Source of the DNA: Lepidodermella squamata
Lineage: Eukaryota; Animalia; Gastrotricha
NCBI GenBank assembly: GCA_047495785.1
Contig: JBLDXI010000066.1
Coordinates: 186,001-250,000, forward strand
Direction of reading: 5' to 3'
Length of the DNA: 64,000 nt
Part shown: piece after piece, positions 1 through 54,799 of the stretch
Position numbering within the stretch: position 1 is the first letter of the stretch
How the letters are laid out: each line of letters opens with the position of its first letter
Translations under genes and position numbers: made by a program
The notes under the pieces: model-generated
What the model was told of the DNA's origin: nothing
Database searches by the model: none
Seen by the model: only the letters and a program-made list of their open reading frames with translations

Positions 1-572
1 TGGGTCATCCGGCCTCTCTGCCAATTCGCAACCTGCAACGCTATTCGCCATCGAGATGACTGCGTAATCAGCGAAACTGAGCCAGATCCCGAGTTGAAGC
101 AAGACTTCCACTGGAAGAAGATCAGTGGCCTGACAGGCAGTTGCATTTCGTTTGAATCCGTCAACAAGCCGAACTTTGTCCTGCGTCACTCAAACTTTAA
201 GCTGTTTCTTACGTGGTACGATGGCAATCAGGGGCTTGCTGCTGATGCGACGTTCTGCGAAAGGCAGCTGGGTTCCGGCATTGGCTACGAATCTGTTAAC
301 TATCCCGGCTACTTCATTCACGTCGATGCCAACAACGAACTCTTCATTCGCCAGAATGCAACGTCGTTGAGTTTTCCCTCGCGCTCAACCTTCCAAGAAA
401 CGGCTTTGGGTAAGTTGCCGGAGATTTAGCTTTCGCATACTGATTGTTTTCTTTTCATAAAACAGCCGTCTGTACCGACTGCGGTGGCGAAAACCAGCAA
501 TGCCTGGAGAACAACAAGTGCACGTGCAAGCCTGGATGGGAAGGGCATAGGTGCACTAAACGCTGTATTTAA
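1..572 (+). CDS. Array paralog 0 (3' part only): AbfB/CBM42-like exon (1-409) + terminal EGF-like exon (466-572)
   Basis: Frame open from base 1 (WVIRPLCQ...SFESVNKPNFVLRH...DATFCER...STFQETAL); GT donor at 410, AG acceptor at 464-465; exon AVCTDCGGENQQCLENNKCTCKPGWEGHRCTKRCI*; AATAAA at 673-678. Confidence 0.85.
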
Positions 573-1140
573 GTTGAAAGAAACCAGAGTTGTGACAATT
601 GCATCAAATGCTACAATGACATTATGTATTCATTGAAATTAAAACCAAAGTTGTCGATATGTTATATTTACCAATAAAACGTTACAATGCATCGTCTGAC
701 TTATATCTGCTTTTGTCTTTTGCTGCAATTTCGAATTTTACATCAATTACTTAGCAAAATAAAACTGCGAATAATCTGCCCAATATGCCGTTCTTCGTCG
801 CGAACTCTCCGCCCCAACAAGGATTGAGGCTCAGAAGGATAAGGGAACATTCTTACAGTAATTTCGGCCTTGCATAGGGCAGTGGTTATCCGTTCCCAGC
901 TGCGCAATTTCAAGTCTGCAGCTTTTCAGAGCTTTCCAGAGCTTTCATTTTGAACTTCGGTTCGACATGTCAGTGTTGAAATTGCGGACGTGGATGCGTG
1001 AAGAAAAAACTCATCCCTCTTTACTACAATCTATATATATGAATATATGATCTATCGAATGAAGCTATGGCTAATGGTTGTCGCTTGTCGCATGCACATT
1101 ACCCCCTGTGGCAAACATCAAGGCAAACATACATCAACGT

Positions 1141-1189
1141 CTGTAGCCTGTAGCCTGTAGCCTGTAGCCTGTAGTCCTGTAGCCTGTAG
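1141..1189. repeat. (CTGTAGC)~7 tandem repeat
   Basis: Directly visible 7-bp unit repeated about 7 times with one inserted base. Confidence 0.9.
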
Positions 1190-1883: not shown

Positions 1884-4020
1884 ATGAACTCGTATTTTTC
1901 AATTACATTTTATTCGGCGGCGATTCTATCAGCGATAGCGATCACCGACTCACTGCAAGCATACAAACGCTGCTTCTCCAGATTCAATGATACGTTCACT
2001 GATTGTAAACCCAGTTGCTCATATTTCGAAGAAATTCAAGTCAGTTTAACTTGACAGCACAAATATTTCTGAAGGAATTATGCTTTGCCAATTTCAGCTA
2101 GGGCTTGCTTTGAATGGCTATGACAGCTGTACTACAGGAGTGGGTTTTTGTGATATTAGTTAATTTTATCTTAGCCTGTTTTATAGTCCGCTCGGAGCTG
2201 TTTCAATTTCAAGCAAACCAGCATGAGGTGCATTCCCAGGAACTTGGGCTGCTCTGCTGACGAAGTTCAGGTAAGGTTCCATCCATTCAAAATACTACAA
2301 AAATTGCAACACATTTTATGTCAGATATCTGATTTCATTGGTCAGTTGTTCAAGGCTAAGTACGACGATTGCAGAGCAGTTATCAAAGGTTTCATGGTTT
2401 GTTTGATGATGATATTCTAAAATCTCAAGAAAAACGCTACATTTTATTTCGCAGACTCGTCGAGCTAACCTATGCGACAAAAACGGCGCCCGGCTATGCA
2501 TACCAAACAATGGAACCTGCCCTAACAGTGGGGTAAGTCTTTTAGGCGTGGTTGATCATCACTGAATTTTTCTGATTTAGCTTATTTTTGTTGAATTTAC
2601 TCTACATATGATGTATGATGGTATATGATGTTGATTTTTACGAGTATTTTCTTATTTAAAATAACGGTTCCGCGTTTCGCGATTTCATGATTCTAATTGA
2701 TAATTGAGTTTTATTATCGAATTAAATATATTTCCGCAGACATTCGTCCGCGCAGTCGTATCGATGCAAGAATGTATGCGAGAACAGAACAGTGAGTTGT
2801 GATGAGCGTGACTTCCAACTCAATCATCCACTCTATTCTGTTTATGTTTTAGTTGTCAGAAACGAAAACGATTTCAAGCCGCACTACCGCTGTTTCCTGA
2901 CCAGCGATCGATCTTTTCTCGGCTGCCAATCGACTACATGTAACAGTAATACAGCTACACAAGTAACATCACGTTTTGATGACTACAATTTTGAAAAATA
3001 ACCAATGAATTTTTTAGGATTTCAGCATTGGCACATACATGGACAAAGCTCACTGCAAAGTTGGCGTGAGTTCATTAAAGGGATGTCATAGCAATATTTT
3101 GTGTGAATATCAATTCCAGCCTGCTGCTCTGTGCTCCTCGGCCTCTGGGAACACGTGTGGAGGTTCATGCAATCGGCCAGGATTAACGCTGGTTGCTACG
3201 TTCAAAGCCAAGAACGATTTTGCTGGAAATTATGGTGACTGCATTGCTGCTCAGGTTTGAATTATTTTAATTTAATGATTATCTCGGGTTATTCTTTATT
3301 TATTTCCAGCCCCATACCCAGTGCCTGGATCAAACTTCGTTTGCATTCGTCAAGTGTCAGCCGCAAGGCACGACCTGCTCAGCCGGGACAATCAGTGGAA
3401 ACACCTTCGACAATTTGAACGATTGCGTGACAAGTGAGTAAATTTTGAGGGTTTGGTATGGTTAGTAGTTTGAGTTATTTACAGTTTTCTGTGCCAACTG
3501 TACAAGTGCGAACCAACAATGCCTGCAGCCCAACACGTGTACGTGCAAGACCTCTTCGGCTCAACAGTGCCAGGCGCCCAACAAGTGCAACATTTGGGTC
3601 ATCCGGCCGGTTTTCCAAATCGCGAGCTGCCGCGCTCTTGGCCATCAAAATGATTTAGCATTTAGCAATGTCGAGCCAGAACCTGAGTTGAACCAAGCCT
3701 TTCAGTGGAAGAAGATCAGTGGCCTGACCGGCAATTGCAATTGCAGCTGTGTTTCGTTCGAAGCCGTTAGCAAGCCGAATTATGTCCTTCGACACGCCAG
3801 CTTTAGGCTTCAGATTACATGGTACGATGGCAATATTGGGCTTGCTAACGATGCGACATTTTGCGAAAGGCCCCTTGAATCTGGGGTTGCCTACGAGGCT
3901 GTCAACTTTTCTGGGTATTTCATTTACGTCGATTCGAACAGCGAAATCTTTCTTCGCCAGAACGACAATACAGAGGATTTCACGTCACGATCCACCTTTC
4001 TAGCAACAGCGATCAATTAA
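1884..4020 (+). CDS. Array paralog 1: secreted 6x(4-Cys repeat) protein with one AbfB/CBM42-like module; 11 exons
   Basis: ATG 1884, signal peptide MNSYFSITFYSAAILSAIAITDS; exons bounded by GT-AG and collinear with the other paralogs; last exon 3485-4020 ends ...TFLATAIN*. Confidence 0.85.
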
Positions 4021-4478: not shown

Positions 4479-5030
4479 TTAATTTGTCACTCTGCATCTT
4501 GTCTCAGCTGAAACCAAAGATGACGATAATATATGACGAACATCCAACGTCCTCTGATTTCCGCTATGAAGACGGGAAGCGCGTCGTGTAGTAACTGAAC
4601 GAAGGTGCCTTTCAATGATTTCACTAAAAAATTCACGACGGGTATTGTCGAGAACAGCACCAACAACACGCACAGCCTCGATAAGCTGGTTGTATCCCAG
4701 CCCACGCATAGCTAGTTCGTCTTTTATCGCAGCCGAGAAAACGTTCACGATAGGGTTCAAAATCGGCGAATAAGGTGGGAGAAATTTGAACTGATGCAGC
4801 TCCCACATTGGGAAATCGGCGTCAGGATAATGGCTTCTCAAATTGTAGTATTATTATATGTCCAGTATTATGACAACTTCGTGTGATGGCGAGCTAGTTT
4901 GCGTGATAACTGTTGCGAATCGATCAGCAGTCATGTCCGTTTCAGAAAATTCGTAGTAGACCAGCCCTCTAACAGGGGAAACTACCAACGCCACAGACAT
5001 ATTTTTGCCGGGCGAAGCTGTGAGCAGTAA
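4479..5030 (-). mobile_element. Degenerate Tc1/IS630-type DDE transposase fragment
   Basis: Minus-strand frames give VVSPVRGLVYYEF...VVIILD and FKFLPPYSPILNPIVNVFS, resembling the LPPYSPDLNPIE motif; catalytic Glu replaced and frame broken. Confidence 0.7.
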
Positions 5031-7366: not shown

Positions 7367-10300
7367 ATGAGGTCGTATTGTTTAATGCTCTATTATTCTG
7401 CGGTGATACTATCAGTAATTGCAATCACCAACTCACAGCAAGCATACAAGCGCTGCTTCTCCAGATTCAATGACACCTTCACTGTTTGTAAAACCAGTTG
7501 CGCATATTTTGAAGAAGTTCAGGTCAGTTGAATTGACGTTTGGACTTCAATAATATGTATGGACAAATTTTGCTTCATTAATTTCAGCTCGGACTTGCTT
7601 TGAATAGCTATGACAGCTGCTTCGCGGGAGTGGGTTTTGCGATATTAATGGATAATTCTATCTTTGCGTTTCTATCTTCCTCTCTTAGTCCGCTCGAAGC
7701 TGTTTCAATTTCGAGCAAACCAGCATGAGGTGTATTCCGAGGAATCTGGGCTGCTCAGCTGATGAAGTTCAGGTATATAAGGTTCCATTATTTCGAAATT
7801 TTATAAAAATTCCACCACATGTCATGCCAGGTATCTGATTACATTGGTAAGTTGTTCAAGATAATATACGACGACTGCAGAGCGGATATCAAAAGTTTTA
7901 TGGTTTGTTTCTTGATATTGAAAAATTCATTCAAAGGGAGAATTGTTATATCGCAGACTCGTCCAGCTAATCTGTGCGTAAAAAATGGCGCCCGGTTATG
8001 CATACCATTCAATGGAACCTGCCCTAACAGTGGAGTGAGTCTATAAGGCGTGGTTAGCCATCATTGTATTTTTCTGTTTCACTTTTTGTTGAATGTTGAA
8101 TCAATCTACAGCATATGATATTTATTTTTTACTCATTTATTCTCATTTAAATATACAATCGATTTTATTAATTTTTGAATAATAACGGATTAATAATATT
8201 TCCGCAGACATACGTCGCCACAATCGTATCGATGCAAGATTGTATTAGGGAACAGAGCAGTGAGTTGCATTAGCTTAGCTTCCAACTCAATCACCAAATC
8301 TATTATGTTATGTTTTAGTTACCAGAAACGAAAACGATTTCAAGCCACATTACCGCTGTTTCCTGACAAGCGATCGATCTTTCCTCGGCTGCCAATCGAG
8401 TACATGCACCAGTAATACTGCTACACAAGTAACCCAATGTTTCTGCGATTAAGAATTTTAAATACAACTGATGGACATTTCCAGGAATTCAGCCCAGGCA
8501 CTTACATGGACAAGGCCCACTGCTCAGTCGGCGTGAGTTCATTTCTTTGAAGCTACATTTTTGCGAATGCGAATGCCAATCATAGCCTGCTGCTCTGTGC
8601 TCTTCAGCCACTGGGAACACGTGTCGAGGTTTATGCAACCTGCCCGGACAAACGCTGGTACGCAGATGATGACAATAGGAAGGCTAACTTTTTTATATTT
8701 TTATTTTTGAATTTGAAATCGATCGAAGCTTTCGACGTTCAATGCCAAGCCCGACTTCGCTGGAAATTATGCTGATTGCATTGCTTCTCAGGTTAGAATT
8801 TTTTAATATTATGATTTCATGTAAATTTGATTCGAATTTATTTCCAGCCCCATACCCAGTGCCTGGATAAAAACGTGTTCACATTCGTAAAATGTCAGCC
8901 ACAAGGGACGACATGCCCAGCCGGAACAATCAGTGGAAAAACCTTTAACAATTTGAGCGATTGTGTAACCAGTGAGTATATTTTGAGGGTATATCAGTGA
9001 GAGAAGTAGCGGGGAGACTGGGAGTACGGTACTCCCAGTTCGACCGGCCGGGAGAATGACAATATTCTCAGAGTACTAGCACAAGTTTCTCGAGATTTTG
9101 CGGCAAGGGTCATTCTTGGATTGGAGATCATTTTCCTGACCATTCTTAGCTGATTTAGGTGCTTGAAACTCATTTTTTTTGGCTCGCTCCGCTCGCCTAC
9201 TGAATACAACCCTCTTTCTCAATTTTTAATGTCGTCAGTGGTTACCAAGTTGTAAGTTGGGCTGGCCGACTTTGTTGAAATGTTTCCTTAGAGCATACGC
9301 CTTTCTAAAACTGTTAGAATGACGTTTTGCGGAAGTACGCGAGAATTAGTTGTTGTTAGCCTCTTCCAAGTCGAAAATTCACAAAAATATCGCCAACTTA
9401 AGCTCGCTTCGCTCGCAGGTGAATAAACGCCCTATGGATTCAGCTCAGCTGTGATTTCTTAGCGGATTCGAACTTAAAAACTCGCAAATTCTCTAAAACA
9501 GGCGCGCAAACGCGCGATTCTTAGGAAATAGCACTAAAGGAAGGTAAATTAAGACCTCTGCGAGCGAGCGCGAAGCGATCGCGAGCGATATTTGTTTTGG
9601 ACTATATGCTGAGGGAATGGCCGAGGTATCCCCAGCTCGAAAGTTCTACTTCGCACACTGGGGTATATGATAGTGGTTGAAGTTATTCTCTGTATAGTTT
9701 TCTGTGCCAACTGCACAAGTGCGAACCAACAATGCCTGCAGAACAACACGTGTACGTGCAAGACCCCTTCGGCTCAACAGTGCCAGGCGCCCAACAAGTG
9801 CAACATTTGGGTCATCCGGCCGGTTTTCCAAATCGCGAGCTGCCGCGCTCTTGGCCATCAAAATGACCTTGCGTTTAGCAATGTCGAGCCAGAACCTGAG
9901 TTGAACCAAGCCTTTCAGTGGAAGAAGAAAAGTGGCCTGACCGGCAATTGCAATTGCAGCTGTGTTTCGTTCGAAGCCGTTAGCAAGCCGAATTATGTCT
10001 TGCGACACAACTACTTCAGGCTCCAGATTATCTATTACAACGGCGATGCGATCGTTGCAACATTCTGCGAAAGGCAGCTGGGTTCCGGAGTGGCTTACGA
10101 GGCTGTTAACCTACCTGGCTATTTTATTCACGTCGATGAGAACAACGATATTGGCCTTAGGCAGAATGACAATTCGACGGATTTCGCGAAACGTTCAACA
10201 TTTCAAGAAACGGCTTTGGGTACGGTGCCTGAGATTTCAATTTCGCTGATTTATTTTCTTCTCATATCAAACAGCCATATGTACCAATTGCACTGGAGAA

Positions 10301-12698
10301 AACCAGGAATGTCTGCGGACCAACCAGTGTACGTGCAAAGCCGGATGGGAAGGTACCGGTTGTACTAAAGGTAGGCTTTATGAATGGCTACGCTCTCTGA
10401 TCCATGGATCTTTCGGGGTAGATCTAACTGGGGTAGAGAAAATTGAACAAAAATGAAATCTTTCATTCCATTTTTCCTTATGGCCATAAGGAGGATCCCG
10501 GAATTTAGACTTTGAAAATTTACAGTAATTTGAATTTTATGAATTGTTGATCGCCCGTTTGATAAATTCAATTTTCGATGTTGGCTTTAAGAATTACAGC
10601 AGACGCGGCGTTATTTGGCATGGTCAGGGCATTCAGTGGTCAGGTAGCTATTATGAAAAAGTATACCTGAGATTGAAACTGAGATTGAAACAACTCGAAA
10701 TTACAGGGTTTCTGATCTCATTTTGATCAAACAAAAAATACTACCGTGACCGCCATAGTCAGATCGACCTCAATTTTTTCGAGTTGAAAACGAAAAATGA
10801 TGAAGCCATTGAAGTTTAACCAAACCGGTTGAAATCGTCCTATCGGCCCAGAGGTAATGCGGGCGAGATACGTTTTTATGTGCTTGAAAACAGCCGCGTG
10901 TGAAAAAGCTGACGTGACTGAATACTGATCAATATGCTGATTTTTGAAAACTGGATTTAACTGATTTTTTTTCCTCTAAATAATAAAGGGAGATTTTCAG
11001 GGACTGTCGAGAGAGAGGCTTAGAGCATGAAAATTCAATGTAGGAGACTTTGATGCTGCGACTAGGGTGTTCGAGAAATGTGCTAAACAGCTGGCCAGAT
11101 AGGGCGATTCTGACCACTTTTGCACAGCCTTAACTTTAATAGATAAAGACAACCGGGTGCAAACTAGTGATCAGGAACCCCTCAAAACCCCTAGAAATGT
11201 TGCCGGATATTTTTTTCTACCGTGGATAAATAATTCGGCAATGAAAGGGTTAATATTAACTTTTAGGAATTATCCTATGCAAGCATGCGGTGTTCACAGA
11301 CATTAATTATTATTTAAAAGCTATCTGTACCAACTGCATCATCGGAAAACAAGAATGTCTACAGCCCAACACGTGTACATGCAAGACCCCTGCGGCTCAA
11401 CAGTGCCAGGCGCCTAACAAGTGCAACATTTGGGTCATCCGGCCGGTTTTCCAAATCGCGAGCTGCCGCGCTCTTGGCCATCATAATGATTTAGCATTTA
11501 GTAATTTCGAGCCAGAACCTGAGTTGAACCAAGCCTTTCAGTGGAAGAAGAAAAGTGGCCTGACCGGCAATTGCAATTGCAGCTGTGTTTCGTTCGAAGC
11601 CGTTAGCAAGCCGAATTATGTCTTGCGACACAACTACTTCAGGCTCCAGATTATCTATTACAACGGCGATGCGATCGTTGCAACATTCTGCGAAAGGCAG
11701 CTGGGTTCCGGAGTGGCTTACGAGGCTGTTAACCTACCTGGCTATTTTATTCACGTCGATGAGAACAACGATATTGGCCTTAGGCAGAATGACAATTCGA
11801 CGGATTTCGCGAAACGTTCAACATTTCAAGAAACGGCTTTGGGTACGGTGCCTGAGATTTCAATTTCGCTGATTTATTTTCTTCTCATATCAAACAGCCA
11901 TATGTACCAATTGCACTGGAGAAAACCAGGAATGTCTGCGGACCAACCAGTGTACGTGCAAGGCCGGATGGGAAGGTACCGGTTGCACTAAAGGTAGGCT
12001 TTATGAATGGCTACGTCTCTGATCCATGGGTCTTTGCAAGGAGCTTGGGGATGAAACCGAACTTTTCAAACATTTCGAAAAAATGTCCTTATTTTAATGT
12101 CACTTGTAGAAATCATCCCTTTCGATATTTCCTGTTCACTGACATTTATTGTTACAAAACAGCTATCTGTAACAACTGCATAGTTGGAAAACAAGAATGT
12201 GTGCAGCCCAACACGTGTTCGTGCCTGGCCCCTTCGAATGATCCGTGCCTATCGCCTCATATGTGTGATATTTGGGTAATTCGGCCTGTTTTTCAAATCT
12301 CGAGCTGCCGCGCTCTTTGCCATCAAAATGACTTTGCCTTCAGCAATGTCGAGCCAGAACCTGAGTTGAACCAGGCCTTTCAGTGGAAGAAGATCAGTGG
12401 CCTGACAGGCAGTTGCAATTGCAACTGCGTTTCGTTCGAAGCTGTCAGCAAGCCGAATTATGTCCTACGACACGCCAGCTATAGGCTCCAGCTTAAATAC
12501 TTCGATGGCAATATTGGGCTTGCTTACGATGCGACATTCTGCGAAAGTCCTCTGGATTCCGGGGTTGCCTATGAGGCTGTTAACTTTGCCGGGTATTTTA
12601 TTTACGTCGATTCGAACAGCGAAATATTCCTTCGCCAGAACGACAGCACACAGGAGTTCGCGTCACGAGTCACCTTTTTAGCAACAGCGATCAACTAG
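7367..12698 (+). CDS. Array paralog 2: secreted 6x(4-Cys repeat) + AbfB-EGF-AbfB-EGF-AbfB; 16 exons
   Basis: ATG 7367 MRSYCLMLYYSAVILSVIAITNSQQ; AbfB exons 9698-10219, 11321-11842, 12163-12698; EGF exons 10275-10370 and 11898-11993; all these junctions phase 1. Confidence 0.85.
8995..9660. mobile_element. hAT-like non-autonomous element in an intron of paralog 2
   Basis: TIR CAGTG(A/T)G(A/C)GAAGTAG; perfect 8-bp TSD GGGTATAT at 8987-8994 and 9661-9668; the equivalent paralog-1 intron is only ~50 bp. Confidence 0.88.
9745..12030 (+). repeat. Near-identical internal duplication (9745-10408 vs 11368-12030, offset 1623)
   Basis: AbfB exon, intron and EGF exon are essentially identical; ORFs 9962..10249 and 11585..11872 translate identically. 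Confidence 0.95.
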
Positions 12699-38074: not shown

Positions 38075-38145
38075 TGTGTTGGAAAGTCATCGTGGGCTGT
38101 AGGCATTCCAATCAGTATAGGCCTGAAACGAAGCAAAACGTTATA

Positions 38146-38218
38146 CGCCGAGACCCGGGATCGAACCAGGGACCTTTAGATCTTCAGTCTAACGCTCTCC
38201 CAACTGAGCTATCTCGGC
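38146..38218 (-). tRNA. tRNA-Phe(GAA)
   Basis: GCCGAGATAGCTCAGTTGGGAGAGCGTTAGACTGAAGATCTAAAGGTCCCTGGTTCGATCCCGGGTCTCGGCG. Confidence 0.93.
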
Positions 38219-39186: not shown

Positions 39187-42046
39187 ATGAGGTCGCATGT
39201 TTCAACGTTATTTTATTTGGCGGTTATTTTATCGGCAATAACGATCACCAACTCGCAGCAAACTTACAAGCGCTGCTTCTCTCGATTCAATGACGATTTC
39301 GCTGGTTGTAAAACGAGTTGTTCATATTTCGAAGAAATTCAGGTGAATCCATTGATAATTTTTCCTTTAATATTAAAATTCTGTCAAACAATTTTTAGCT
39401 CGGCCTTGCTTTGAATAGCGCTGCTGCATGCGCCGAAGGAGTTGGTTTTTTTATTGTATTTTTTATGTTTAATTTGTTTATCTTAATTTGCCTTACAGAA
39501 CGCTCGAAGCTGTTTCAATTACAAGCAAACCAGCATGAGATGCATCCCTAGGAACTTGGGCTGCTCGGCAGCTGATGAAGTCCTGGTAGGGTTCAATGTC
39601 GTTGAAAATTGAGTACAAATTACAAATACCACTGTTTTCCTCCATCAGACAGAGGAGTACATTGGCCAGTCGTTCATTGTGAGGTACGAGGTTTGCAGAA
39701 ATGACACCAAAAATTTCATGGTTTGTTTGTTTGGTCTCAAAAACTAAAGCAAACTAATACATTTTATTTTCAGTCTCAGCCAGCTTATCTGTGCGACAAA
39801 AACGGCGCCCGGCTATGCATACCGATCAATGGAACTTGCCCAAATGGCGGGGTGAGTCTGTCATTCGGGATTTCAATCGCATTAAATAAATTCAAAAAAT
39901 TAAACTTAAAGTTCGTTTATCATTCCAAGATAGAATTACACTAAGTTCATTTATTAAAATGTTAGCGAATTCCTGTTCCCTGTTCCCACAGACTCGTCTC
40001 CGCAAATTCCCGACGATGCGAGCTTGTATGAGACAGCAGAACAGTGAGTTGCCTTACCATTGATTATTATCTCAGTAATCATCCTAATCCTAACGTTAGT
40101 AAGCAGAAACGAAAACGATTTCAAGCCGCACTACCGCTGTTTCCGGATCAGCGATCGATTTTTCCTCGGCTGCCAATCGACAACATGTGACACTGTTACA
40201 GCTACACCGGTAATTATCTGCTTCAGCGATTATTGGATTTTATTAAAAGTGTTGAATTTTCCAGGGCTTCAGCATGGGCACTTACGTGGACAAAGCACAC
40301 TGCACAGTTGGCGTGAGTTCATGTCATTGACGATCGAAGCAATTTATTTTTACTATTTTTTGTAAATAAAATAAATTCCAGCCCGCTGCTCTGTGCTCGT
40401 CAATCAGTGGAAACACATGCCGAGGTTCATGCAGCAGTCCCGGACTAACACTGGTATGAAGATATTAACAACAGCATGGGCAAATTACAATTGTTAATAT
40501 TTCTTTAAATTTAAGGTTGCTACGTTCAAAGCCAAGCCCGACTTCGCTGGTAATTATGCTGACTGCATTGCTGCTCAGGTTTGAATTATTTTTGGATTTT
40601 ATGATTTTTTATTAAGCTATTCTGAATTTATTTCCAGCCCCATACCCAGTGCCTGGATCCGAATTCGTTTGGATTCGTCAAATGTCAACCACAAGGCACG
40701 AGCTGCCCAGCCGGAACAGTCAGTGGAAACACCTACAGCAACTTGAACGATTGCTTGACAAGTGAGTGAATTTGCAATGCTTCGTATAATCTCTAGAACA
40801 AACCTAACTCTTCAGCTCAAAAAATAGAATATTAATGAGATCTCTCGGTCTTTTCTATAAACGATCATTCTTTTTATCGAACAGTCTTCTGTCCCAACTG
40901 CACTGCCTCGAACCTTCAATGCCTGCAGCCCAACACGTGTACGTGCAAGCCCCCAGCGAATCCCCAGTGCACGGCCAGTGCCACTCTTCAGTGTGACGTT
41001 GTCGTGATTCGGCCTGTCTTTCCACTTCCAACCTGCAGCGCTCTTCGCCACGACGGTGATCCTGTAGTCAACTATGATGCCGAGCCAAATCCTGAACAAA
41101 ACCAAGACTTTCAGTTCAGAAAGAGAAGTGGCCTGCTCGGCGACGCCTGCACTTGCAACTGCGTCTCCTTCGAATCCGTCAATGGCTTCAACAAATACCT
41201 ACGTCACTCGTCGTACAAGTTGAAAATTGACTGGTACGATAACGTCGTCAGCCCTGGGGTCGTTAACGATGTGACATTCTGCGAACGTACTCGAACAAAC
41301 GGCGTTGCTTACGAGGCTGTCAACTTTCCAAATTTCTTCATTCATGTCGATGCGAATAATGAAATCGGCCTTCGCCGGAATGACAATTCAGCGGATTTCA
41401 CGTCGCGTTCCACTTTTGTGGAAACGGTTGTTAAAATAGGTGGGTAGCATTGTTGGGTGAGACATGTTTGTACATGTATATAGGAAAGCTTTTGTAACAT
41501 TAGATCAAGGAATTTTCGCAAGTTTTCAGACTACTTATTTCCTTGTTTTGAATAGATATCCCGGGTTCGGGCCAAACATGCCCGGCACCTTCGAATCCTC
41601 GTTGCCAGGCGCCTAGCAAGTGTGACACCTATGTCATTCGGCCTGCTTTCCAAGTCACAAGCTGCAACGCTCTTGGCCATCAAGGCGATGTCGTTGGTAG
41701 CTATCTCGAACAAAATCCCGATTCGAATCAAAGCTTTCAATGGAAGAGAGTACGTGGCCTGACAGGCACTTGCTATTCTTTCAAGTCCGTCAACAGTGCT
41801 GGTCATTACATACGCCACACCTACTTCAAGGTCGTGATTTCCACGTACAACAACAATGCGGGCGTCGCTAGAGATGCGACATTCTGTGAAAAGGCTCGTC
41901 AAAACGGCACTGTTGCCTACGAGGCTGTCAACTACCCGAATTACTTCATCTATGTCGACACGAACAACGAAGTCCAACTGCGCCAGTTTGATCCTTCACC
42001 GGATTTCGCGATGCGAACCACCTTCCTCGCAACAATTATCCACTGA
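39187..42046 (+). CDS. Array paralog 5: secreted 6x(4-Cys repeat) + 2 AbfB/CBM42-like modules
   Basis: ATG 39187 MRSHVSTLFYLAVILSAITITNSQQ; AbfB exons 40885-41439 and 41556-42046. Confidence 0.87.
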
Positions 42047-44364
42047 GCAAAGAAGCGTTAATTTATTGACAGACTATAATCAAGTGAACAATCAAATGAT
42101 GTTAAATTGTGTTATCAATTTGTTAGAGTTGAGAGCGATTACATGCTGATTGAATATAACGCTGCGTTTTCAGTGTTATTCAAATTAGCTGAAATTATTT
42201 ATTTATTTATTTATTTGCTGACGAAATTTGCTGAGATGCTATCTAATAGCTATCTAAAGATTGTAAAATAATAAACTAATTTATTTTGGCTTTATTTATA
42301 GTTGTCCCTTCCCCGATATGAACGTGAACCTTTCAGGCTTAAATTCCCCCATTTTTTCGGCATTCATCACCCGGTGAAGTTGTAGGAAATGAGTAAATTA
42401 GGATCAATAGTGACAGTACCTGCCGCATAATAGCATCACTCAGGGCAAGCGGGATGTCGTTGCTCGGCTGGGCAAGGAAGTGGACGGTTGCGATTTTGAC
42501 TGCATCGACGATAGAGTGGCCGGCAGAGCGACTTGTAGCCTTGTAGCCTGAGTCGCACCGACGCGACATCGCTCCCTAATTTCTGCCTAACATTACATAT
42601 CACCAATCGGGCCGATTGTAACGGCAAGCTGGGTCCATTTCCCAAAATCCCAAATTGATTGATTCGGGTAGAGGACATCACAAGGGGCGTGCTCGTCATT
42701 TTTCTACAATTTTTTACAGAAATCAGAACAAGCTTCATCAGCGAAAAATAGCTTTACAATTACAAATAAAACTGATTTTGGTGATTAATTAATTAAGTCG
42801 AAATTGAAGCTGTTTTTTAGGGTAGCTCGCAGGCAGCTCGCGTCATCATGGTCCAGATTTCTGTACTTGGACGATTTTTGCTGAATTTCCTATGAATTTT
42901 AAAAAGGGTCCTCCTTCGCAGAACCAACTTTTGGAATTGTCTAGTGGCCTGACATCACTTTTCGGATATTTCTTGCGGGTCAAGAGTGACTACAAAAATT
43001 ATAAAGAAATCACCAGCCGAAAGCATATTTGGTTCCGTAAAATTGGTTCCGCTAAAAGATGTATTCTGTATTTAAAATAACGGCATCTGGTTATAACGGT
43101 CAATTAGGCATATTTTACGAACAATTTTTTTTTTCAATTTACCTGAAAAATTCGAAACAAATTACCAACGTCTTCCTTGTGAAACCCGCTGCCTGAATCG
43201 ACCAATATTCAGAAAAAATCACATTATAGCGTGTCCCTTAAGTTGAAATAGCATAGAAAAAATACATACAAAAGGATTCAGAAACTCTTAAATGAGAGCC
43301 GACGTCTCATGGCCAGAATTTTTTTAATAAATTAAAAAAAAATAAATCACGAGAATGGTAGGTAATCAAGTATGTCACTCGTTAATTGGATTAAAACAGA
43401 TCGCACAAATTAGATCCAAACCGGCAAAACACCGAAAATACCTGGCACGTGCTTAACGAAAATTATGCAAAATAGCAGTAGCAGTGAGGAACATTTTGAT
43501 TGAAAAATATCTGATTTAAAGCACTAAAAATAAGTTTTCGCAAAGTTTTGATTGAATTAAAAAATCGAATCGAATTCCGGAAAGTCCAAATTTTAAGAAT
43601 TGGGGGACCACATTTTTTTCCCAGAAAAATATTTTTTTCTTCAGAAATTATTTTTAGTAGAAAGGCCTTTTTCCGCCAGAAAGCCCATTTTTGTTAACAT
43701 AAAACTGCGAAATTGCATAAAAATTGTAATAAAAAGTTGAGCAAAGCAAATGACCCTGCGATTCCTTTCTCATTTTATATAAATTATAAAAAAAATGGAA
43801 AAATTACACGAGATGAAGAAATAAATACTCGCATTGGCGCAAATGTTCCAAATTAGTGCTAATTTTCAGAAATAATTAAGCGAAAATTGATCTCTGATTC
43901 TTTCCAATTTCGAATTTTTTATTTCAGCTACATGGTGCCCTAAGCTAATTAGAAAAATTATCGTTGATGGGTTTGGCTGATATCGGGAAAATCTCTGATT
44001 TGTAAAATTGATACCTGTAATCGATATCGGCTCTAAAAGTAATCCGACCGCTCATAGCGCCAAATACGCGTAATATGAAGGTCTATCGGTTGGGCATGAT
44101 AAAAAAATTTGAAATTCGAAAATTTGTAAATGTCTAGTGAAGACAAGAAACTCGAAAAACCTTATTATACCTAGAGGGAAATTTAGTGCTGGAACCCTGA
44201 AATTTTCCAACAATATCAGCGTTAATTTGCCGATTAGCAAAAAGCAAACGAATGGACGTTATATCAACAGTAATAGCGATCACTGGTTGAATATTATTTT
44301 GAAATAATAACTAGACACGTGGCTTGTTGAAATTAACTTATTGGGAATAGACATCTATTGTCTG

Positions 44365-45794: not shown

Positions 45795-48700
45795 ATGAGG
45801 TCGCATTTTTCAACTTCATTTTATTTGGCGGTTATTCTATCGGCAATTATAACGATAGCCAACTCGCAGAAGCCAACTTACAAGCGCTGTTTCTCTCGCT
45901 TCAATGACGATTTCACTGGTTGTAAAACCAGTTGTTCATATTTCGAAGAAATTCAGGTGAATTCATTTGATAATTTATCCTTTAATAATAATCCATTAAA
46001 ATTCTGTCAATCAATTTTCAGCTCGGTCTTGCTCTGAATAGCCCTGCTGCCTGCGCCGAAGGAGTAATTATTTTTTAAATTTTTTAAATTTTATTTATTT
46101 TTCGAAAATGTCTGCCCTATAGTCCGCTCGAAGCTGTTTCAATTACAAGCAAACCAGCATGAGATGTATTCCTAGGAATTTGGCCTGCTCAGCAGCTGAT
46201 GAAGTTCACGTAGGTTCATCTATAAATCGAAAATTTAGTGAAAATAAATTCCGCTTTTTTTCGCAGACATTCGAGTTCATTGGCCAGTCGTTCAAGACAA
46301 AGTACGAAGATTGCAGAACGAATATCAAAAGCTTTATGGTTTGTTCGATAATCTCGTGCCTAAATTCGCTTTTATATTATTTCATATATTTTATAGAGTC
46401 GTCCAGCTTACCTGTGCGACAAAAGTGGCGTTCGGTCGTGTATTCCAATCAATGGAACCTGCCCCAGTGGCGGAGTGAGTGTATTAACCGTTATTCGCCT
46501 TATTATCTCTACCGTTCTATAGATTTATATGTAGTTTAACATTATTTGCCAAGATTTGCAGTTAAAATAATTAATTAATAATCAATTTGAAAATTTCAAC
46601 GCCGAATTCCTCTCACCTATCAAGAGGTATTGCTTTTTGCTTTGCTAGAATTTCTAGCCAAAATTCAATTTAATGTGGAATATTTTTTAAAATTCAACAA
46701 AAAATGTAGCGAAATTGTTTCATTAGAATTTTTATTAGTTCGGGATATAATTGATTTTTCGAAATTAAATAGCGATTTTCTTGTTTAAAAATTAGGGTGC
46801 CAACTTTCATACATAAATATGTATGAAATTTTTACCTTTCATACATATTTATGTATGACAAAATTAACTTTCATACATATTTATTTTCATTAAATTCGAG
46901 CTGAAAACATTAGGGAAATGCCAGATGACTAGATTTCGGTTTATGTGAAAGAAAAACGGGGTTCCGAAAGCGTGGTCAATTTTTTCCGCATGAAAATGGT
47001 TATTGGGGAAGCGCAAGGGCCCAAAAATCGAACTTTGTAGAAACCCGAAACTCGAACTACCCTAACCCTAAACCTTAACCGTGAACCCTAACCAAACCCT
47101 AAACCTAACCCTAACCCTAACCCGAACCCTGGCACCTAACCCTAACCCCCAACCCCAATTCCTAATCACAGTTTGGCTAAAAAACACGATTTTATGAAAA
47201 AAAATATGTATGAAAGTTAATTTTGTCATACATAAATATGTATGAAAGGGAAAAATTTCATACATAAATATGTATGAAAGCGCACTTCGTAAAAATTATT
47301 TGTATTCGGTATTCGAAACATCGAGCATTTTGTGAAAATTTATTTATCAAGAAATGTTATACTCTTCAAAATTAAATATACATTTTCCTGAAATAAAATA
47401 AAAAATTCGAGATTTTTCCAATTTCTCTCCTTGAAGACATAAGCTCAATCTAATTCCCATCAGTCGTATCATTTAGTATTTAAAAAAAATTCAAGTCATG
47501 AAATTGAGCGATTTAATTTTTTAATTTTCAAAAAATTTCTGAAAATATATTTTTAATTTTGTTATTTTTCCACAGGCAGTCGTCCGAACAGTCGCGTCGA
47601 TGCAATCCTGTATGAATCAGCAGTACAGTGAGTTGTGGTTTTGTTATCTCGCTGATCATCTTCATCCTGCCTTTCCTTAAATCATAGTTACGAGAAACGA
47701 AAGCGATTTCAAGCCGCATTACCGCTGTTTCCTGACTAGTGATCGATCTTTCATCGGCTGCCAATCGACAGCATGCACCAGTAACACAGCTACACAAGTA
47801 ACGTTTTGCTTCATTAATTGTTTAGGGTTTGTAACGAGTATTAATGTTTTATTAGGATTTCAGCCTTGGCACTTACATGGACAAGGCCCACTGCACAGTT
47901 GGCGTGAGTTCATGCCTTTAAAGTTAAAACCAATTCATTGATCAATTTTTTTAAATTAATTTCAGCCTGCTGCTCTGTGCTCTTCCGCCAATGGGAATAT
48001 TTGTCGGGGTTCTTGCAACCGGCCCGGACTAACTCTGGTATGAAGAGGAAAGCTAAATTATTCGTTCTTGATTTTTCAAATTTTAAATCAGGTTTCTACG
48101 TTCAAAGCCAAGACCGATTTTGCTGGGAATTATGCTGACTGCATTGCTACCCTGGTTTTGATTATTACTTGAAATTCAGCATATTAAAAGTTAATTTATT
48201 TCCAGCCCCATACCCAGTGCCTGAATCAAAATTCGTTCGCATTCGTCAAATGTCAGCCTCAAGGCACGACCTGCCCCGCTGGAACAGTAAGTGGAAACAC
48301 CTACAACAACTTGAACGATTGCATGACAAGTGAGTAAATTTGAAATATATTCCTTTTACCTGACGTGTCTTCCCTGAAAAGTTCATGATTAATTCTATCC
48401 GAAATCTATCCCCATTTCAAACAGGAGAAAATCTTAGGAAAATCTGAAAATTTTGTTTGTTTTCGAAATTCCAGCTAGAATGAGATTGCCTGGATGAGGT
48501 GAGCTTCTAGTCGGAACACTGGCAAATGAAAAATTTTTCCTCCAACTTAAAACTATCACTGGTTGGAGCAAGAAATCAAATTTAGACGTTCAAAAAATAT
48601 ACATTTGAGGGATTGACAGCGTTTACCTTTTTTATACCCTGATCTCTCATCTCTGATATCTGTTTTATTCAACAGTCTTCTGCGCCAACTGCACTGCTGC

Positions 48701-49778
48701 GAACTTACAATGCCTGCAGCCCAACACGTGCACGTGCAAGGCCCCGGCGAATCCTCAGTGCACGGCCAGTGCCAGTCTTCAGTGTGACGTAGTTGTGATT
48801 CGGCCTGTCTTTCCACTCCCAACCTGCAGCGCTCTTCGCCACGACGGTGATCCCGTAGTCAGCTCTGCCGATGAAGATCCTGAACAGAACGAAGACTTCC
48901 TGTTCAGGAAGAGAAGTGGCCTGCTCGGCGACGCATGCACTTGCAACTGCGTCTCCTTTGAATCCGTCAATGTCTTTAACAAATACTTCCGTCACTCGAA
49001 CTGGATGCTCAAAATTGACTGGTACGATAACGTCATCAGCCCAGGCGTCGTTAACGATGTGACATTCTGCGAACGGACTCGAACAAACGGCGTTGCTTAC
49101 GAGGCTGTCAACTTTCCTAATCATTTCATTCATATCGATGAAAACAATCAAATCGGCCTTCGCGAAAATGACAATTCAGCGGATTTCACGTCGCGTTCCA
49201 CTTTTGTGGAAACGGTTGTTAAACGAGGTATATAACCCCCTTGTGGTTGCTACTTCTTCCGATTGCTTCAATTTTAATTCTTGTATTCTTGAACAGATAT
49301 CCCAGGTTCGGGCGTAACATGCACAGCGCCTTCGAATTCCCCGTGCCAGTCGTGTGATATTTATGTCATTCGGCCTGTATTTCAAATTACAAGCTGCAAC
49401 GTTCTCGGTATTCAAAATGGAGCTGTTGTTAGCATTCCCGATGAAAGTCCCGATTCGAATTCAGGCTACCAATTTCAGAGGGTTGCTGGCAAGTCAGGCC
49501 AATGCTTCTCTTTCGTACCCGTAGCATTGCCTGATAATGTAATGCGTCACTCCTACTTCAAGATCGTTACTTCCTTTTTCGATGGCTCAGAGGGGGTCGT
49601 TAAAGATTCGACATACTGCGAAAGAACTCGGGATAACGGCGCAATTGCCTACGAGGCTGTCAACTACCCGGGTTACTTCATCTATGTCGACACGACCAAC
49701 GAAGTCCAACTTCGCCAGTTTGACCCTTCACCGGATTTCGCGATGCGCACCACCTTCCTCGCAACAGTTGTCTCCTAA
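45795..49778 (+). CDS. Array paralog 6: secreted 6x(4-Cys repeat) + 2 AbfB/CBM42-like modules
   Basis: ATG 45795 MRSHFSTSFYLAVILSAIITIANSQ; AbfB exons 48676-49227 and 49297-49778. Confidence 0.85.
46795..47289. mobile_element. MULE-like non-autonomous element with internal CCCTAA repeats (copy B, inverted relative to copy A)
   Basis: Perfect 9-bp TSD TAAAAATTA at 46786-46794 and 47290-47298; degenerate (CCCTAA)n at ~47060-47157. Confidence 0.85.
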
Positions 49779-51070: not shown

Positions 51071-54000
51071 ATGATTTCGCATTTTTCAACGTTAATTTAC
51101 TTGTCGGTTATTTTTTCGGCAATGATGATCACCAACTCGCAGCAGCCCACATACAAGCGCTGCTTTTCTCGAGTTAATGACGATTTTGCAGGTTGTAAAA
51201 CCAGTTGCTCATTTTTCGACGAAATTCAGGTGAATCTCTGGCCGTTTTACTTGATAATACCCCTATTTAAATCGTGTCAACCAAATTTTAGCTCGGCCTT
51301 GCTTTGAATAGCCCTGCTGCCTGTGCCGCAGGAGTGAGTTTTTTTATATATTGTTTTTAGTTATTGTGCAATTTAATTTTGCCTCCTAGAACGCTCGAAG
51401 CTGTTTTAATTACAAGCAAACCAGCATGCGATGTATTCCTAGAAACATGGCCTGCTCAGCAGCTGACGAAGTTCAGGTAGGGTTATCTTTTGATCAAAAA
51501 TTGAGGCACATTTCCCCACCCGCCGGTGTTTCCTCCACGCGCGCATTCCTATTGGTTGGTTAAATTTACGCGTAACCGCACGTCGCGCGCATTTATTGCG
51601 CAACAAATAATTTCTACGCGCGCCCTGCAAAATCATAAGAAAACCACAAGTCAGCTAGCAAGTCCATCAGCAAGTATATCATGTGAAGCGCGCGCATCGA
51701 GAGTACATATTTCAATTAGTACCAAGTTTCAAAAGGTTGCAAATCAAGAAGATATGCGAGAAATAATGATGACAATCGACGAGGCGCCCAACAATATTTC
51801 CAAGCAAAATAAAATCGCGCCACCATTGTTCATCATGATATTAGGTCGCTGTTATGAAATCGCAATTTTTCTACATTTTTAGAAGCGATTGAGTTTTGAT
51901 CATTTTGACATTTTGATATTTTGATGAAATTACCCCAAATTCACCGAAAATACCTCGCTCGTGCCATCGGTGCGCGCTTTCGCAATTTGTTCCATTTTCC
52001 ATTTAATCGATAGGTAAATAAGAACAAAATACATGATAATCCAAATTTTGTCAAGTTTTTCGACAAATAATCTGCCTTAATTTAAGCTTTTTATTTTTCT
52101 TGAAAGCATTTTGCTGACTCAGCGAAGGGCGCAGTCGTCTTTGGTCTCGTCCGTGCGCAACAGCGCGCGCACGAAGGCTGTAATTATCTTGGCTGTTGCG
52201 CAACAAGGTCCAGCCAATAGGAGCGCGCGCGGAGGAAACACCGGCGGATGGGGAAATGTGCAAAATTGAGTGGAATATTCCGCTGATTATCCGTAGACAT
52301 TCGAGCACATCGGCCAGTCGTTCACGGCCAAGTATGAAGATTGCAGAACGGATATCAAAGATTTCATGGTGTGTTCGATGATCTCGCAATATGTTACATC
52401 ATGCTTCATAATATTTTATCTCGCAGATTCGTCCAGCTTATCTATGCGACAAAAGCGGCGTCAGGCTCTGTATTCCATTCAATGGGACCTGCCCTAATGG
52501 CGGGGTGAGTCTATTAACCGTTTTGTCCTCTCAAGTATAATATCGAAAAAAACGCTCTCGCTCGTCACTCCAATTCATAATACGAGATTTTATTTTTCTT
52601 ATTTCATAAAATTCATCGGATAGATCTGAATGAGTATTTGTGAATTGTTTTCCCACAGACACTCGTCCGAACAGTTGCATCGATGCAATCCTGTATGAGA
52701 CAGCAGTCCAGTGAGTTTTATAGTCTCACTGATTATCGTAATACTGTCTTTCTATACACATTAGTTACCAGGAACGAAAACGATTTCAAGCCGCACTACC
52801 GCTGTTTCCTGACCAGTGATCGATCTTTCCTCGGCTGCCAATCGACAGCATGCACCAGTAATACAGCCACGCAGGTAACCTATAGCTCATGTGTTTATCG
52901 GCCTGTTTATGTAACGATGAATTTGTTTAGGATTTTAGCCTTGGCACTTACCTGGACAAGGCCCACTGCTCAGTTGGCGTGAGCTCATGACTTTGAAGAT
53001 AAAACCAATTCGTTATTTTTGGAATATCAATTTCAGCCTGCTGCTCTGTGCTCTTCAGCCAATGAGAGCACGTGTCGGGGTTCGTGCAACCGGCCCGGAC
53101 TAACGCAAGTAGGGAGATCATGAAAATTTCACCAGTTTTTGATTTTCAAATTTGAAATCAATCAGGTTGCTACGTTCAACGCCAAGCCCGACTTCGCTGG
53201 AAATTATGCTGATTGTATAGCTGCTCAGGTTGGAATTTTTCATTTTTATGATTTTATGTAAATTTATTCCGAATTAATTTCCAGCCCCATACCCAGTGCC
53301 TGGATCAAACTTCGTTCGCATTCGCCAAATGCCAACCACAAGGCACGAGCTGCCCAGCCGGAACAGTCAGTGGAAACACCTACAACAACTTGACAAGTTG
53401 CTTGACAAGTGAGTGAATAGTAAATTTGAAACTATTACTAGTCTATTCTCGAATCGCTCATTTTTTAATTGAATAGTCTTCTGCGCCAACTGCACTGCTG
53501 CGAACTTACAATGCCTGCAGCCCAACACGTGCACGTGCAAGGCCCCGGCGAATCCTCAGTGCACGGCCAGTGCCAGTCTTCAGTGTGACGTAGTTGTGAT
53601 TCGGCCTGTGTTTCCACTCCCAACCTGCAACGCTCTTCGCCATGACGGTGATCATGTAGTGAGCTCTGCCGATGCAGATCCTGAACAGAACGAGGACTTC
53701 CTTTTCAGGAAGAGAAGCGGCCTGGCCGGCAACTGCAAATGCAGCTGCGTTTCCTTCGAATCTGTCAATGTCTTCAATAAATTCCTACGCCACTCGTCGT
53801 TCAAGTTCGAGATTGACTGGTACGATACCACCTGGAACAAGGGTGTTGCTGACGATACGACATTCTGCGAAAGGACTCGACAAAACGGCGTTGCTTACGA
53901 AGCTATCAATTTTGCCAATCATTTTATTTTCGTTAATGCGAACAACGACATCGGCATTCGTGAGAATGACAATTCAGCGGATTTCATATCGCGTTCTACT

Positions 54001-54799
54001 TTCGTGGAAACGGTTGTTAGAAGAGGTATGTAGGTTTTTTGTTATTGCTACTTTCCCCCGATCTCCATAATTGTTTCATCGACATTTTCAAGATGAAAAC
54101 AGCCGAAATATGCTGGCTTTCAGCTAACTTGAGCACCAAATTTGAACTTGCGCTTTTTCCAGTGAGAAATAAGTGAATTTTACCCGTTTATTGCAATTCT
54201 AGATTAAACCTGTTAGCTCAACGTTAAAGCTTGAGGTCTGGAATACATTACTCCTTTAATTAAACTCTTCCATAACTTTAACTTCAATAAAATTCTATTC
54301 TTGAATAGTCATCCCTGGTTCGGGTCACTCATGCCCTGTGCTTTCGAACCCACCTTGCGCAGCGCCAAAAGCGTGCGATACCTATGTCATTCGTCCTGCT
54401 TTTCAAGCCACAAGCTGCAACGCTATTCGTCATCAATATGGAGTCGTAATTAGCTATCCCGAATCAAATCCCGATATGAATCTTGACTTTAAATGGAAGA
54501 AGGTACCCGGCCTTGCAGGCAATTGCACTTCTTTCAAATCTGTCAACATTCCGGGCAATTACTTACGTCACGTCAACTTTAAGGCCATCATTACCTACTA
54601 CAATGGCGATCCGTTACTCGCAAAAGATGCGACATTCTGCGAAATATCCCGCGAAAACGGCACTGTTGCTTACGCGACTGTCAATTTTGCTAATTACTTC
54701 CTTTATGTCGACACGAACAACGAAGTCCAAATTCGCCAGTTCGACCCTTCACCGGACTACGCGATGCGTACCACCTTTCTCGCAACAGTTGTCGCCTAA
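51071..54799 (+). CDS. Array paralog 7: secreted 6x(4-Cys repeat) + 2 AbfB/CBM42-like modules
   Basis: ATG 51071 MISHFSTLIYLSVIFSAMMITNSQQ; AbfB exons 53477-54025 and 54309-54799. Confidence 0.85.
51506..52261. mobile_element. MULE-like MITE in intron 3 of paralog 7
   Basis: ~50-bp TIR GCACATTTCCCCA(C/T)CCGCCGGTGTTTCCTCC...; perfect 9-bp TSD AAAATTGAG at 51497-51505 and 52262-52270. Confidence 0.9.

Follow-up and report, generated by a model that had tools for sequence, protein, structure and literature searches.

In microbes, CBM42/AbfB domains are familiar components of the enzymes that act on plant cell walls, and to our knowledge they are almost unstudied in animals. Otogelins are giant mucin-type matrix proteins of vertebrates built on VWD, C8 and TIL domains, and intelectins are soluble, multivalent lectins for microbial galactofuranose, which are fibrinogen-like and calcium-dependent. 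Arabinofuranose and galactofuranose are made by plants, algae, fungi, bacteria and protists, and beta-D-galactofuranose is a look-alike of alpha-L-arabinofuranose; we know of no animal that makes alpha-L-arabinofuranose or beta-D-galactofuranose. The pockets of CBM42 modules bind arabinofuranose via a His/Tyr/Asp triad (PMC12493170), and galactofuranose binding has been proposed for a CBM42 (PMC11627007).

Here we analysed a stretch of 64,000 nucleotides from the compact genome of Lepidodermella squamata (the window), which carries a tandem array of genes with AbfB heads. Judged from sequence, the seven complete genes (P2 to P8) are a real, lineage-specific, lectin-like secreted family. Our main reading, to which we give a probability of about one half, is that this tandem family encodes secreted, non-enzymatic, modular proteins that would act as soluble lectins by which food particles or microbes are recognised or captured.

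Structure of the gene array

The seven complete neighbouring paralogs occupy positions 1884-54799 of the window on the plus strand, and their spliced models were built from paralog alignments. The encoded proteins are 478–890 aa long with open reading frames in all seven genes, while the probability of a random 650-codon open frame at the local base composition is about 1e-18. Each gene has 11–19 exons, all introns (91 of 91; median 59 nt) are GT-AG, and splice sites are conserved between paralogs. Poly(A) signals lie 110–240 nt past the stop codons, and the search for a shared promoter motif upstream of the genes gave only patchy similarity, among P5–P8. It is extremely improbable that the array is silent or decaying or that the gene models are wrong: no protein of the species was found in the protein libraries searched, but 7 of 7 frames are intact over their many exons, the introns are canonical throughout, and a dS of 0.4–1.0 among paralogs with dN/dS well below 1 would be unexpected for pseudogenes of that age.

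An N-terminal set of 11 exons is common to the family (10 in P2, in which one intron is lost). The N-termini are signal-peptide-like and no further hydrophobic segment follows; signal peptide, six four-cysteine modules (the stalk) and EGF/AbfB cassettes cover the proteins fully, and no catalytic domain was found in Pfam scans of the exons. P6 (39187..42046; 13 exons, 649 aa) serves as the reference model, in which exon 1 (39187-39342) encodes the signal peptide and the first half of module 1, modules 1–6 are encoded by exons within 39187-40761, and two heads follow, AbfB-a (40885-41439) and AbfB-b (41556-42046). Three other genes have the same layout of a stalk and two AbfB heads on 13 exons, namely P5 (33592..37337, 652 aa; AbfB-a 36096-36653, AbfB-b 36838-37337), P7 (45795..49778, 647 aa; AbfB-a 48676-49227, AbfB-b 49297-49778) and P8 (51071..54799, 648 aa; AbfB-a 53477-54025, AbfB-b 54309-54799).

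The remaining genes depart from this layout in their cassettes. P2 (1884..4020; 11 exons, 478 aa) carries one EGF-like plus AbfB exon behind the stalk (3485-4020; assigned by Pfam, AF2 and Foldseek), and its module 5 is a single exon (3120-3254) that has lost the internal intron. In P3 (7367..12698; 16 exons, 890 aa), two EGF exons sit between the AbfB exons, and the order after the stalk is AbfB (9698-10219), EGF (10275-10370), AbfB (11321-11842), EGF (11898-11993) and AbfB (12163-12698). P4 (18707..24266; 19 exons, 561 aa) has no AbfB module, and its stalk is followed by eight EGF exons (23070-23165, 23214-23315, 23404-23505, 23561-23656, 23713-23805, 23861-23953, 24009-24098 and 24154-24266); a 2.5-kb intron of this gene (19361-21925) carries a repeat. 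All these features are on the plus strand, as is the fragment P1 (1..572), which consists of an AbfB exon running off the window start and ending at 409 with a phase-1 donor, and an EGF exon with a stop (466-572). Because no N-terminal set is visible, P1 is probably the 3' end of an upstream AbfB-EGF gene and not a stalk-bearing paralog.

The sequence-only reading had counted eight same-strand paralogs, of which the seven complete ones stand and P1, for the reason just given, is probably not a full member. The spliced models bear out that the complete paralogs share N-terminal exons and differ in their C-terminal cassettes. They return the AbfB counts given earlier for these genes (1, 3, 0, 2, 2, 2 and 2 from P2 to P8), and they place the eight EGF exons said to replace AbfB in one gene in P4 (23070-24266). 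Its description of the proteins as secreted and free of catalytic and TM domains likewise agrees with the signal peptides, the lack of any other hydrophobic segment and the lack of a catalytic domain match.

Other content of the window includes two ORFs of class-C-type 7TM receptors that are unrelated to P2–P8 (13411-15828, and 30599-32945 with a frame break), together with a laccase exon and a LINE ORF. One unclassified sequencing run from 2015, possibly of RNA, contains a fraction of 0.33 of the region's 31-mers.

The AbfB heads compared with known proteins

Five AbfB exons were scanned against Pfam PF05270 and scored 38.9–71.2 bits (cut-off 22.8; E 1e-9 to 1e-19). For example, the second AbfB module of P6 matched with an E-value of 1.2e-19. 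The remaining modules align to the scanned ones at 40–94% identity, and AbfB-b of P7 is the most divergent. The AF2 model of an AbfB module is a beta-trefoil (pLDDT 89.6), for which the best 19 Foldseek matches are all CBM42 entries (3kmv, TM 0.89 and rmsd 1.9; also 9nxg/9nxh and 1wd3). On the CBM42 structures used for comparison below it superposes with TM-scores of 0.87–0.89 and an rmsd of about 2 Å. The alignment to 1wd3 and 3kmv spans the beta subdomain with the disulfide and the 'RH' and 'DATF' motifs. The earlier proposal that these modules are AbfB beta-trefoils is thus upheld both by PF05270 scores above the gathering threshold and by the CBM42 structures as best Foldseek matches, and on profile and predicted fold the AbfB call for the heads is solid.

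In order to compare, we used the CBM42s of AkAbfB (1wd3; GH54/GH43 arabinofuranosidase group), C. thermocellum CBM42A (3kmv) and AtAbf43C (9nxg). Like these modules, the P2–P8 heads match PF05270, have a superposable predicted beta-trefoil and keep the conserved disulfide and, in 10 of 13 modules, the beta-pocket triad. Unlike them, they are found in an animal without any glycoside hydrolase, have a degenerate gamma pocket, share only 20–26% identity, and are preceded at the first AbfB cassette by an EGF-like Cys-rich stretch. This stretch forms the opening half of the first AbfB cassette in each AbfB-bearing gene.

The best eukaryotic matches are secreted animal proteins with multiple AbfB domains (34–36% identity), and when protein representatives were searched exhaustively with the P2 AbfB exon, no match exceeded 37% identity. 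The animal proteins come from the tunicate Clavelina lepadiformis (CAK8691439-42; the four accessions follow one another on a single contig) and the hydrozoan Clytia hemisphaerica (XP_066911515), and like P2–P8 they have a signal peptide (judged by eye), AbfB trefoils, here in tandem, and no enzyme domain. In the Clavelina and Clytia proteins, however, the AbfB repeats directly follow the signal peptide without a stalk or EGF, whereas P2–P8 place 0–3 trefoils behind a 280-aa stalk. Together with the AbfB transcripts of the Hydra basal disc (XP_002167824 and XP_002159690), these AbfB-only proteins make the sequence-only statement that animal AbfB is mainly of otogelin type too narrow. Otogelin and otogelin-like proteins resemble P2–P8 in being extracellular, non-enzymatic animal proteins with AbfB (one domain in otogelins), but Pfam scans of the exons found no VWD, C8 or TIL match in P2–P8.

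The four-cysteine stalk

The stalk of each P2–P8 protein is about 280 aa long and consists of six modules of about 45 aa with four cysteines each, spaced C-x6-10-C-x3-6-C-x15-27-C. Modules 1–5 are split by a phase-0 intron between Cys3 and Cys4, giving a three-Cys exon and a one-Cys exon, while module 6 is unsplit. Similarity among the six modules is marginal by hhalign (best E 0.003–0.007), and we read them as repeats because of their common Cys spacing and exon structure. The fold model of P6 module 6, which lies in one exon (40638..40761), has a three-stranded sheet and a short C-terminal helix (pLDDT 92.7).

No match was found in Pfam, PDB or ESM Atlas for the four-cysteine modules (searched as single-exon pieces and with the fold of P6 module 6), in line with the first description of this part as an unrecognised Cys-repeat region, which now resolves into six modules. 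A Kazal-type domain was considered and rejected: the lone Kazal_3 match is below threshold (E=0.095; 12.9 bits against 26.2) and lies on a 26-aa exon, the module has four cysteines against the six of Kazal, and no Kazal structure turned up in the fold search.

In a library of 1.8 billion representatives, the stalk is not among the matches of any of the 64 closest AbfB proteins, and EGF is not in the 25 commonest Pfam partners listed. The absence of the stalk from the matches of these 64 fits the earlier statement, in which no described family with this architecture was known. The four-cysteine module appears to be a lineage-specific building block of extracellular proteins. A further-reaching and unlikely proposal is that the stalk, as a new small disulfide fold, would be the chassis of a large lineage-specific repertoire for soluble recognition, in which phase-compatible cassettes swap heads of unrelated folds and the CBM42 branch is aimed at furanosides.

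EGF exons and cassette evolution

The EGF pattern C-x2-C-x6-C-x5-C-x-C-x8-C is present in the P4 exons. For example, the exon at 23713-23805 (scanned as 23709-23810) exceeds the cut-offs of EGF_Teneurin (PF23106; 29.6 bits against 24.3) and EGF_2 (PF07974; 23.8 against 22.1), and the other EGF exons give sub-threshold profile matches with an identical Cys pattern. By profile and cysteine pattern, the P4 exons are of the teneurin/tenascin type. EGF4–7 of P4 form a 148-bp tandem array detected by TRF.

All cassette exons of P2–P8 are in phase 1-1. P3 contains an internal duplication, in which 9701-10413 and 11324-12035 are 96.2% identical, and in the tree of AbfB modules the P1 module groups with those of P2 and P3. 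The number and type of cassettes thus changed as exons were duplicated and shuffled with the adjoining AbfB-EGF gene.

Pairwise dN/dS is 0.21–0.40 in the stalk and 0.27–0.69 in modules at equivalent positions, with dS among paralogs of 0.4–1.0; dN/dS values of 0.21–0.69 therefore point to constraint by purifying selection. The family had been called rapidly diversifying, which holds for cassette number and type and does not hold for the sequence itself. This indicates purifying selection combined with cassette shuffling, and not pervasive rapid diversification.

Sugar pockets and proposed function

Of the 13 modules in the alignment, 10 retain the His/aromatic/Asp triad of the beta pocket, whereas P3a, P3b (Asp to Val) and P5a (His to Gln) have lost it. 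Every module is without the His and Asp of the gamma pocket, which is functional in characterised CBM42s, and in the alpha pocket Asn/Gln stands where Asp would be. Going by these residues, most heads retain one canonical sugar pocket.

Each trefoil would thus offer a single working sugar pocket, the beta pocket, and P2–P8 would be soluble lectins whose valency of 1, 2 or 3 is set by the number of cassettes. Their ligands may be glycans ending in furanosides, such as alpha-L-arabinofuranose or beta-D-galactofuranose, and the stalk may serve as a spacer or an oligomerisation rod. At a secretory surface, P2–P8 would most likely serve to recognise, agglutinate or capture microbes or particles of food. 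The proposed principle, a soluble multivalent lectin for non-self sugars, resembles that of the intelectins, but their fold is unrelated to the P2–P8 trefoils and the likeness would be a functional analogy only.

Several observations count against the lectin reading, namely the degenerate gamma and alpha pockets, the absence of the beta triad in P3a, P3b and P5a, the P4 protein without any lectin head, and the fact that animal AbfB domains of known context belong to matrix or adhesive secretions and not to immunity. In each trefoil the alpha and gamma pockets are degenerate, and the two Venus-flytrap/7TM receptor ORFs are located between family members. These observations would also suit trefoils that bind no sugar and act as protein-protein modules like IL-1/FGF, for example as ligands or co-factors of the interleaved class-C-type receptors. 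We regard this as very improbable, since the beta triad persists in most modules (10 of 13), the reading frame of the second receptor copy is broken, and adjacency by itself counts for little in a genome so rich in tandem families.

A structural role is possible, though somewhat unlikely. P2–P8 would then belong to a mucus, a glue, an apical matrix or an egg/cuticle layer, where the trefoils and the EGF repeats would hold together glycoproteins of the animal itself as cross-linkers, the stalk would be a rod, and non-self recognition would not be the purpose. The human AbfB domain is confined to ECM proteins (PMC4224354), two AbfB-domain transcripts are specific to the basal disc of Hydra, which consists of adhesive cells (PMC5080974), and in P4 the place of the lectin heads is taken by eight repeats of EGF, a module typical of matrix proteins. 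However, proteins of 478–890 aa are small for such a role, Pfam scans of the exons revealed no polymerising domain such as VWD or collagen, and purifying selection acts on a canonical triad for furanosides, sugars that animals are not known to make.

In summary, P2–P8 form a constrained, expanded family in which an animal appears to have adopted CBM42/AbfB as a stand-alone binding unit, and the stalk with its exchangeable cassette exons is a tidy natural case of exon-shuffling modularity. If the stalk proved to be the chassis of a larger repertoire, it would equip the animal with a combinatorial repertoire of soluble receptors that recognise foreign glycans. The family is a candidate for the way in which a small invertebrate may recognise sugars foreign to it, or build a secretion cross-linked through glycans.

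Gene models of the family

In this eukaryotic DNA (about 41% G+C), clustering of stop-to-stop ORFs revealed + strand blocks recurring seven to eight times, and the biggest recurring ORFs match the Pfam AbfB domain (PF05270, CBM42) with E-values of 1e-9 to 1e-16. An exhaustive search with the AbfB exon of the first complete gene found no protein of the species itself in the searched libraries (best match 37% identity), so exon boundaries were taken from paralog comparison, using the paralog DNA alignment and splice sites consistent in frame and phase. The resulting + strand genes are P2 (1884-4020; 11 exons, 478 aa), P3 (7367-12698; 16 exons, 890 aa), P4 (18707-24266; 19 exons, 561 aa), P5 (33592-37337; 13 exons, 652 aa), P6 (39187-42046; 13 exons, 649 aa), P7 (45795-49778; 13 exons, 647 aa) and P8 (51071-54799; 13 exons, 648 aa).

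All introns of P2-P8 are GT-AG (91 of 91; median 59 nt), and splice-site positions are kept across all paralogs. Each model reads without interruption from its ATG to its stop (7 of 7), while the chance of a random open frame of 650 codons is about 1e-18 at the composition of the window. AATAAA/ATTAAA signals lie 110-240 nt 3' of every stop. Membrane-grade hydrophobicity is confined to the N-terminal ~20 residues, a signal peptide, and the seven products are predicted to be secreted modular proteins.

The sequence-only reading had counted eight paralogs, of which these seven are complete genes. Its "paralog 1", at 1-572 (+), consists only of an AbfB exon running off the window start and a terminal EGF exon with the stop, and is read as the 3' end of a gene entering from upstream.

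A public run of unclear type, from 2015, contains a third of the 31-mers of 33400-42400, close to the coding fraction of this region (~43%), and may be a transcriptome.

A four-cysteine stalk

Directly after the signal peptide, P2-P8 carry a stalk of six units of ~45 residues, each with four cysteines spaced C-x6-10-C-x3-6-C-x15-27-C. In units 1-5 a phase-0 intron between the third and fourth cysteine separates a three-cysteine exon from a one-cysteine exon (the intron of unit 5 was lost in P2), while unit 6 is one undivided exon. Profile-profile comparison between units is marginal (E=0.003 for units 4 and 6, 0.005 for units 1 and 4, 0.007 for units 3 and 5), so the repeat reading rests mainly on the common cysteine spacing and two-exon layout.

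Pfam searches at E-values up to 10 with single-exon stalk pieces, including P6 unit 6 and P2 unit 5 in full, returned no family except one Kazal_3 match (E=0.095) on a 26-aa exon. A model of unit 6 predicted by AlphaFold2 (AF2) from the seven paralogous copies reached pLDDT 92.7 and shows three strands plus one short helix at the C-terminus. Foldseek gave no PDB match below E=1.5 for it, and a profile search of PDB sequences reached E=0.19. In the ESM Atlas, matches by shape were to unrelated families (TM up to 0.59), and no usable match was obtained by sequence features. Kinship based on these weak matches was set aside, and they were taken as a common small arrangement.

C-terminal cassettes

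The C-terminal cassette exons of P2-P8 are all phase 1-1 and of two kinds, AbfB and EGF (~32 aa). The AbfB counts of 1, 3, 0, 2, 2, 2 and 2 for P2 to P8 agree with those of the sequence-only reading. The first AbfB cassette of a gene opens with an EGF-like stretch of seven cysteines, and the second one of P5-P8 has a shorter lead with three. Eight EGF exons are present in P4, and in P3 one follows each of the first two AbfB exons; the P4 exon at 23713-23805 exceeds curated Pfam cut-offs (EGF_Teneurin 29.6 bits, EGF_2 23.8 bits). P3 contains an internal duplication of 714 bp (AbfB exon, intron and EGF exon) with 96.2% identity, and EGF4-7 of P4 form a 148-bp tandem array. The copy number of heads, as we call the C-terminal domains, is set by symmetric cassette exons.

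One predicted sugar pocket per trefoil

The proposed AbfB identity was borne out by Pfam, with scores up to 71 bits, and by the predicted beta-trefoil fold. The AF2 model of the P2 cassette, built on an alignment of 12 window modules and 16 database segments, has a mean pLDDT of 89.6, and the top 19 PDB structures retrieved for it by Foldseek are without exception CBM42 entries, among them 3kmv (TM 0.89, rmsd 1.9 A), 9nxg/9nxh, 1wd3, 3akf and 9fnk. The same entries were returned by a PDB sequence search.

In AtAbf43C, arabinofuranose is held by His/Tyr/Asp in the beta (H70/Y73/D89) and gamma (H118/Y121/D136) pockets, and the alpha pocket is dead (PMC12493170). In the alignment used for the P2 model, the beta motifs "RH-x-x-F/Y" and "DATF" and the flanking disulfide are kept in 10 of 13 window modules; the exceptions are P3a and P3b (a and b give the order within a gene), where Asp is changed to Val after a small deletion, and P5a, where His is changed to Gln. 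Both His and Asp of the gamma subdomain are lost in every window module, and the alpha subdomain keeps its His with Asp changed to Asn/Gln. The AbfB heads are true CBM42 trefoils, and from the pocket pattern we infer one canonical pocket in each. Galactofuranose binding was proposed for a CBM42 joined to a galactofuranosidase (PMC11627007); the ligand of these heads need not be arabinose.

Selection and history

Pairwise dN/dS of the stalk is 0.21-0.40 at dS of 0.42-1.06 (Nei-Gojobori), and that of AbfB modules at equivalent positions is 0.27-0.69, with second modules the most relaxed. P2-P8 are paralogs of some age under purifying selection. These ratios favour function and speak against pervasive positive selection; a silent array is a very unlikely minor reading. 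The earlier description of the family as rapidly diversifying holds only for the changes of cassette (the P3 duplication and the P4 EGF array), while dN/dS of 0.21-0.69 speaks against it.

In the module tree, the P2 and P3 AbfB modules cluster with that of stretch 1-572, and a pair of a-type and b-type modules is common to P5-P8. Stalk trees pair P2/P3, P5/P6 and P7/P8, with P4 most divergent, whereas the a-type module tree pairs P6a/P7a, a conflict that hints at exchange between neighbouring genes.

Upstream of the ATGs of P5-P8 (33332-33592, 38927-39187, 45535-45795 and 50811-51071), short common motifs occur in two blocks, GGCACGCGC and TTCATTCATT, which are absent from P2-P4 and could be a common promoter of a younger subgroup.

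Other features among the genes

Between P3 and P4 lies an unrelated ORF of the class-C receptor type (13411-15828, +; Pfam ANF_receptor and 7tm_3), intact, intronless and 805 aa long, with seven hydrophobic segments, a Venus-flytrap domain (ANF_receptor, E=2e-18) and a weak 7tm_3 match. It is very divergent: no match as good as E 1e-10 was obtained from the 8000 scored candidates, picked for shared words out of 5.8 billion proteins. A second copy at 30599-32945 (+; ANF_receptor and 7tm_3) is divided by a frame break near 32530 into ORFs 30599-32557 and 32532-32945. Immediately 5' of it, 30142-30608 matches the 3' end of the first copy together with its flank (15566-16034) at 83% identity, as if it were the remnant of a third. 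That the trefoils bind proteins and are linked to these interleaved receptors is an improbable, minor alternative.

One repeated element lies in opposite orientations at 19587-19904 (+) and 46867-47295 (-), each time within an intron of unusual length (2565 nt in P4, 1101 nt in P7), and probably represents an inserted transposon. At 4479-4841 (-) there is a remnant of a DDE_3 transposase (E=7e-4). Also unrelated to the family, an intact LINE ORF (59880-62675, +; 931 aa, endonuclease and reverse transcriptase) has its best database relatives, at 46-51% identity, almost only in environmental assemblies. Unrelated multicopper-oxidase (laccase-type) exons at 55579-57532 and 63067-63803 (-), whose sequence is partly repeated on both sides of the LINE, look like two tandem genes or one interrupted gene.

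Comparison with known AbfB proteins and possible role

Nearest among eukaryotic AbfB proteins, at 34-36% identity, are uncharacterised secreted proteins with tandem AbfB domains from Clavelina lepadiformis, a tunicate (four accessions in a row on a single contig), and Clytia hemisphaerica, a hydrozoan; the sequences inspected have neither stalk nor EGF. In a Pfam scan of the 64 closest AbfB representatives, galactose-oxidase-like domains, GH64, GH2, subtilase and astacin lead the listed partners, and EGF is missing from the 25 most frequent families listed. Neither the combination of stalk and AbfB nor the EGF-AbfB cassette layout turned up outside this genome in the searched libraries and these 64 representatives.

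Two transcripts of Hydra that encode AbfB domains are specific to its adhesive basal disc (PMC5080974); they were interpreted as hydrolases, yet contain the binding domain only (PMC5080974; PMC9589958, PMC7037938). Among human proteins, those with an AbfB domain all belong to the extracellular matrix (PMC4224354). Together with Clavelina and Clytia, these cases indicate that stand-alone AbfB proteins exist in animals but are little studied. Their matrix and adhesive context, as well as the EGF-only member P4, would suit a tentative second reading, in which the proteins are matrix, mucus or glue components cross-linking the animal's own glycoproteins.

We give a probability of about 0.5 to the reading of the family as soluble lectins, in which the CBM42 heads would bind furanoside-bearing foreign glycans with a valency of 1-3 given by head number, and would serve to recognise or agglutinate their targets or to capture particles. 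On this reading the stalk would be a rod for spacing or assembly, with P4 as a variant without lectin heads.
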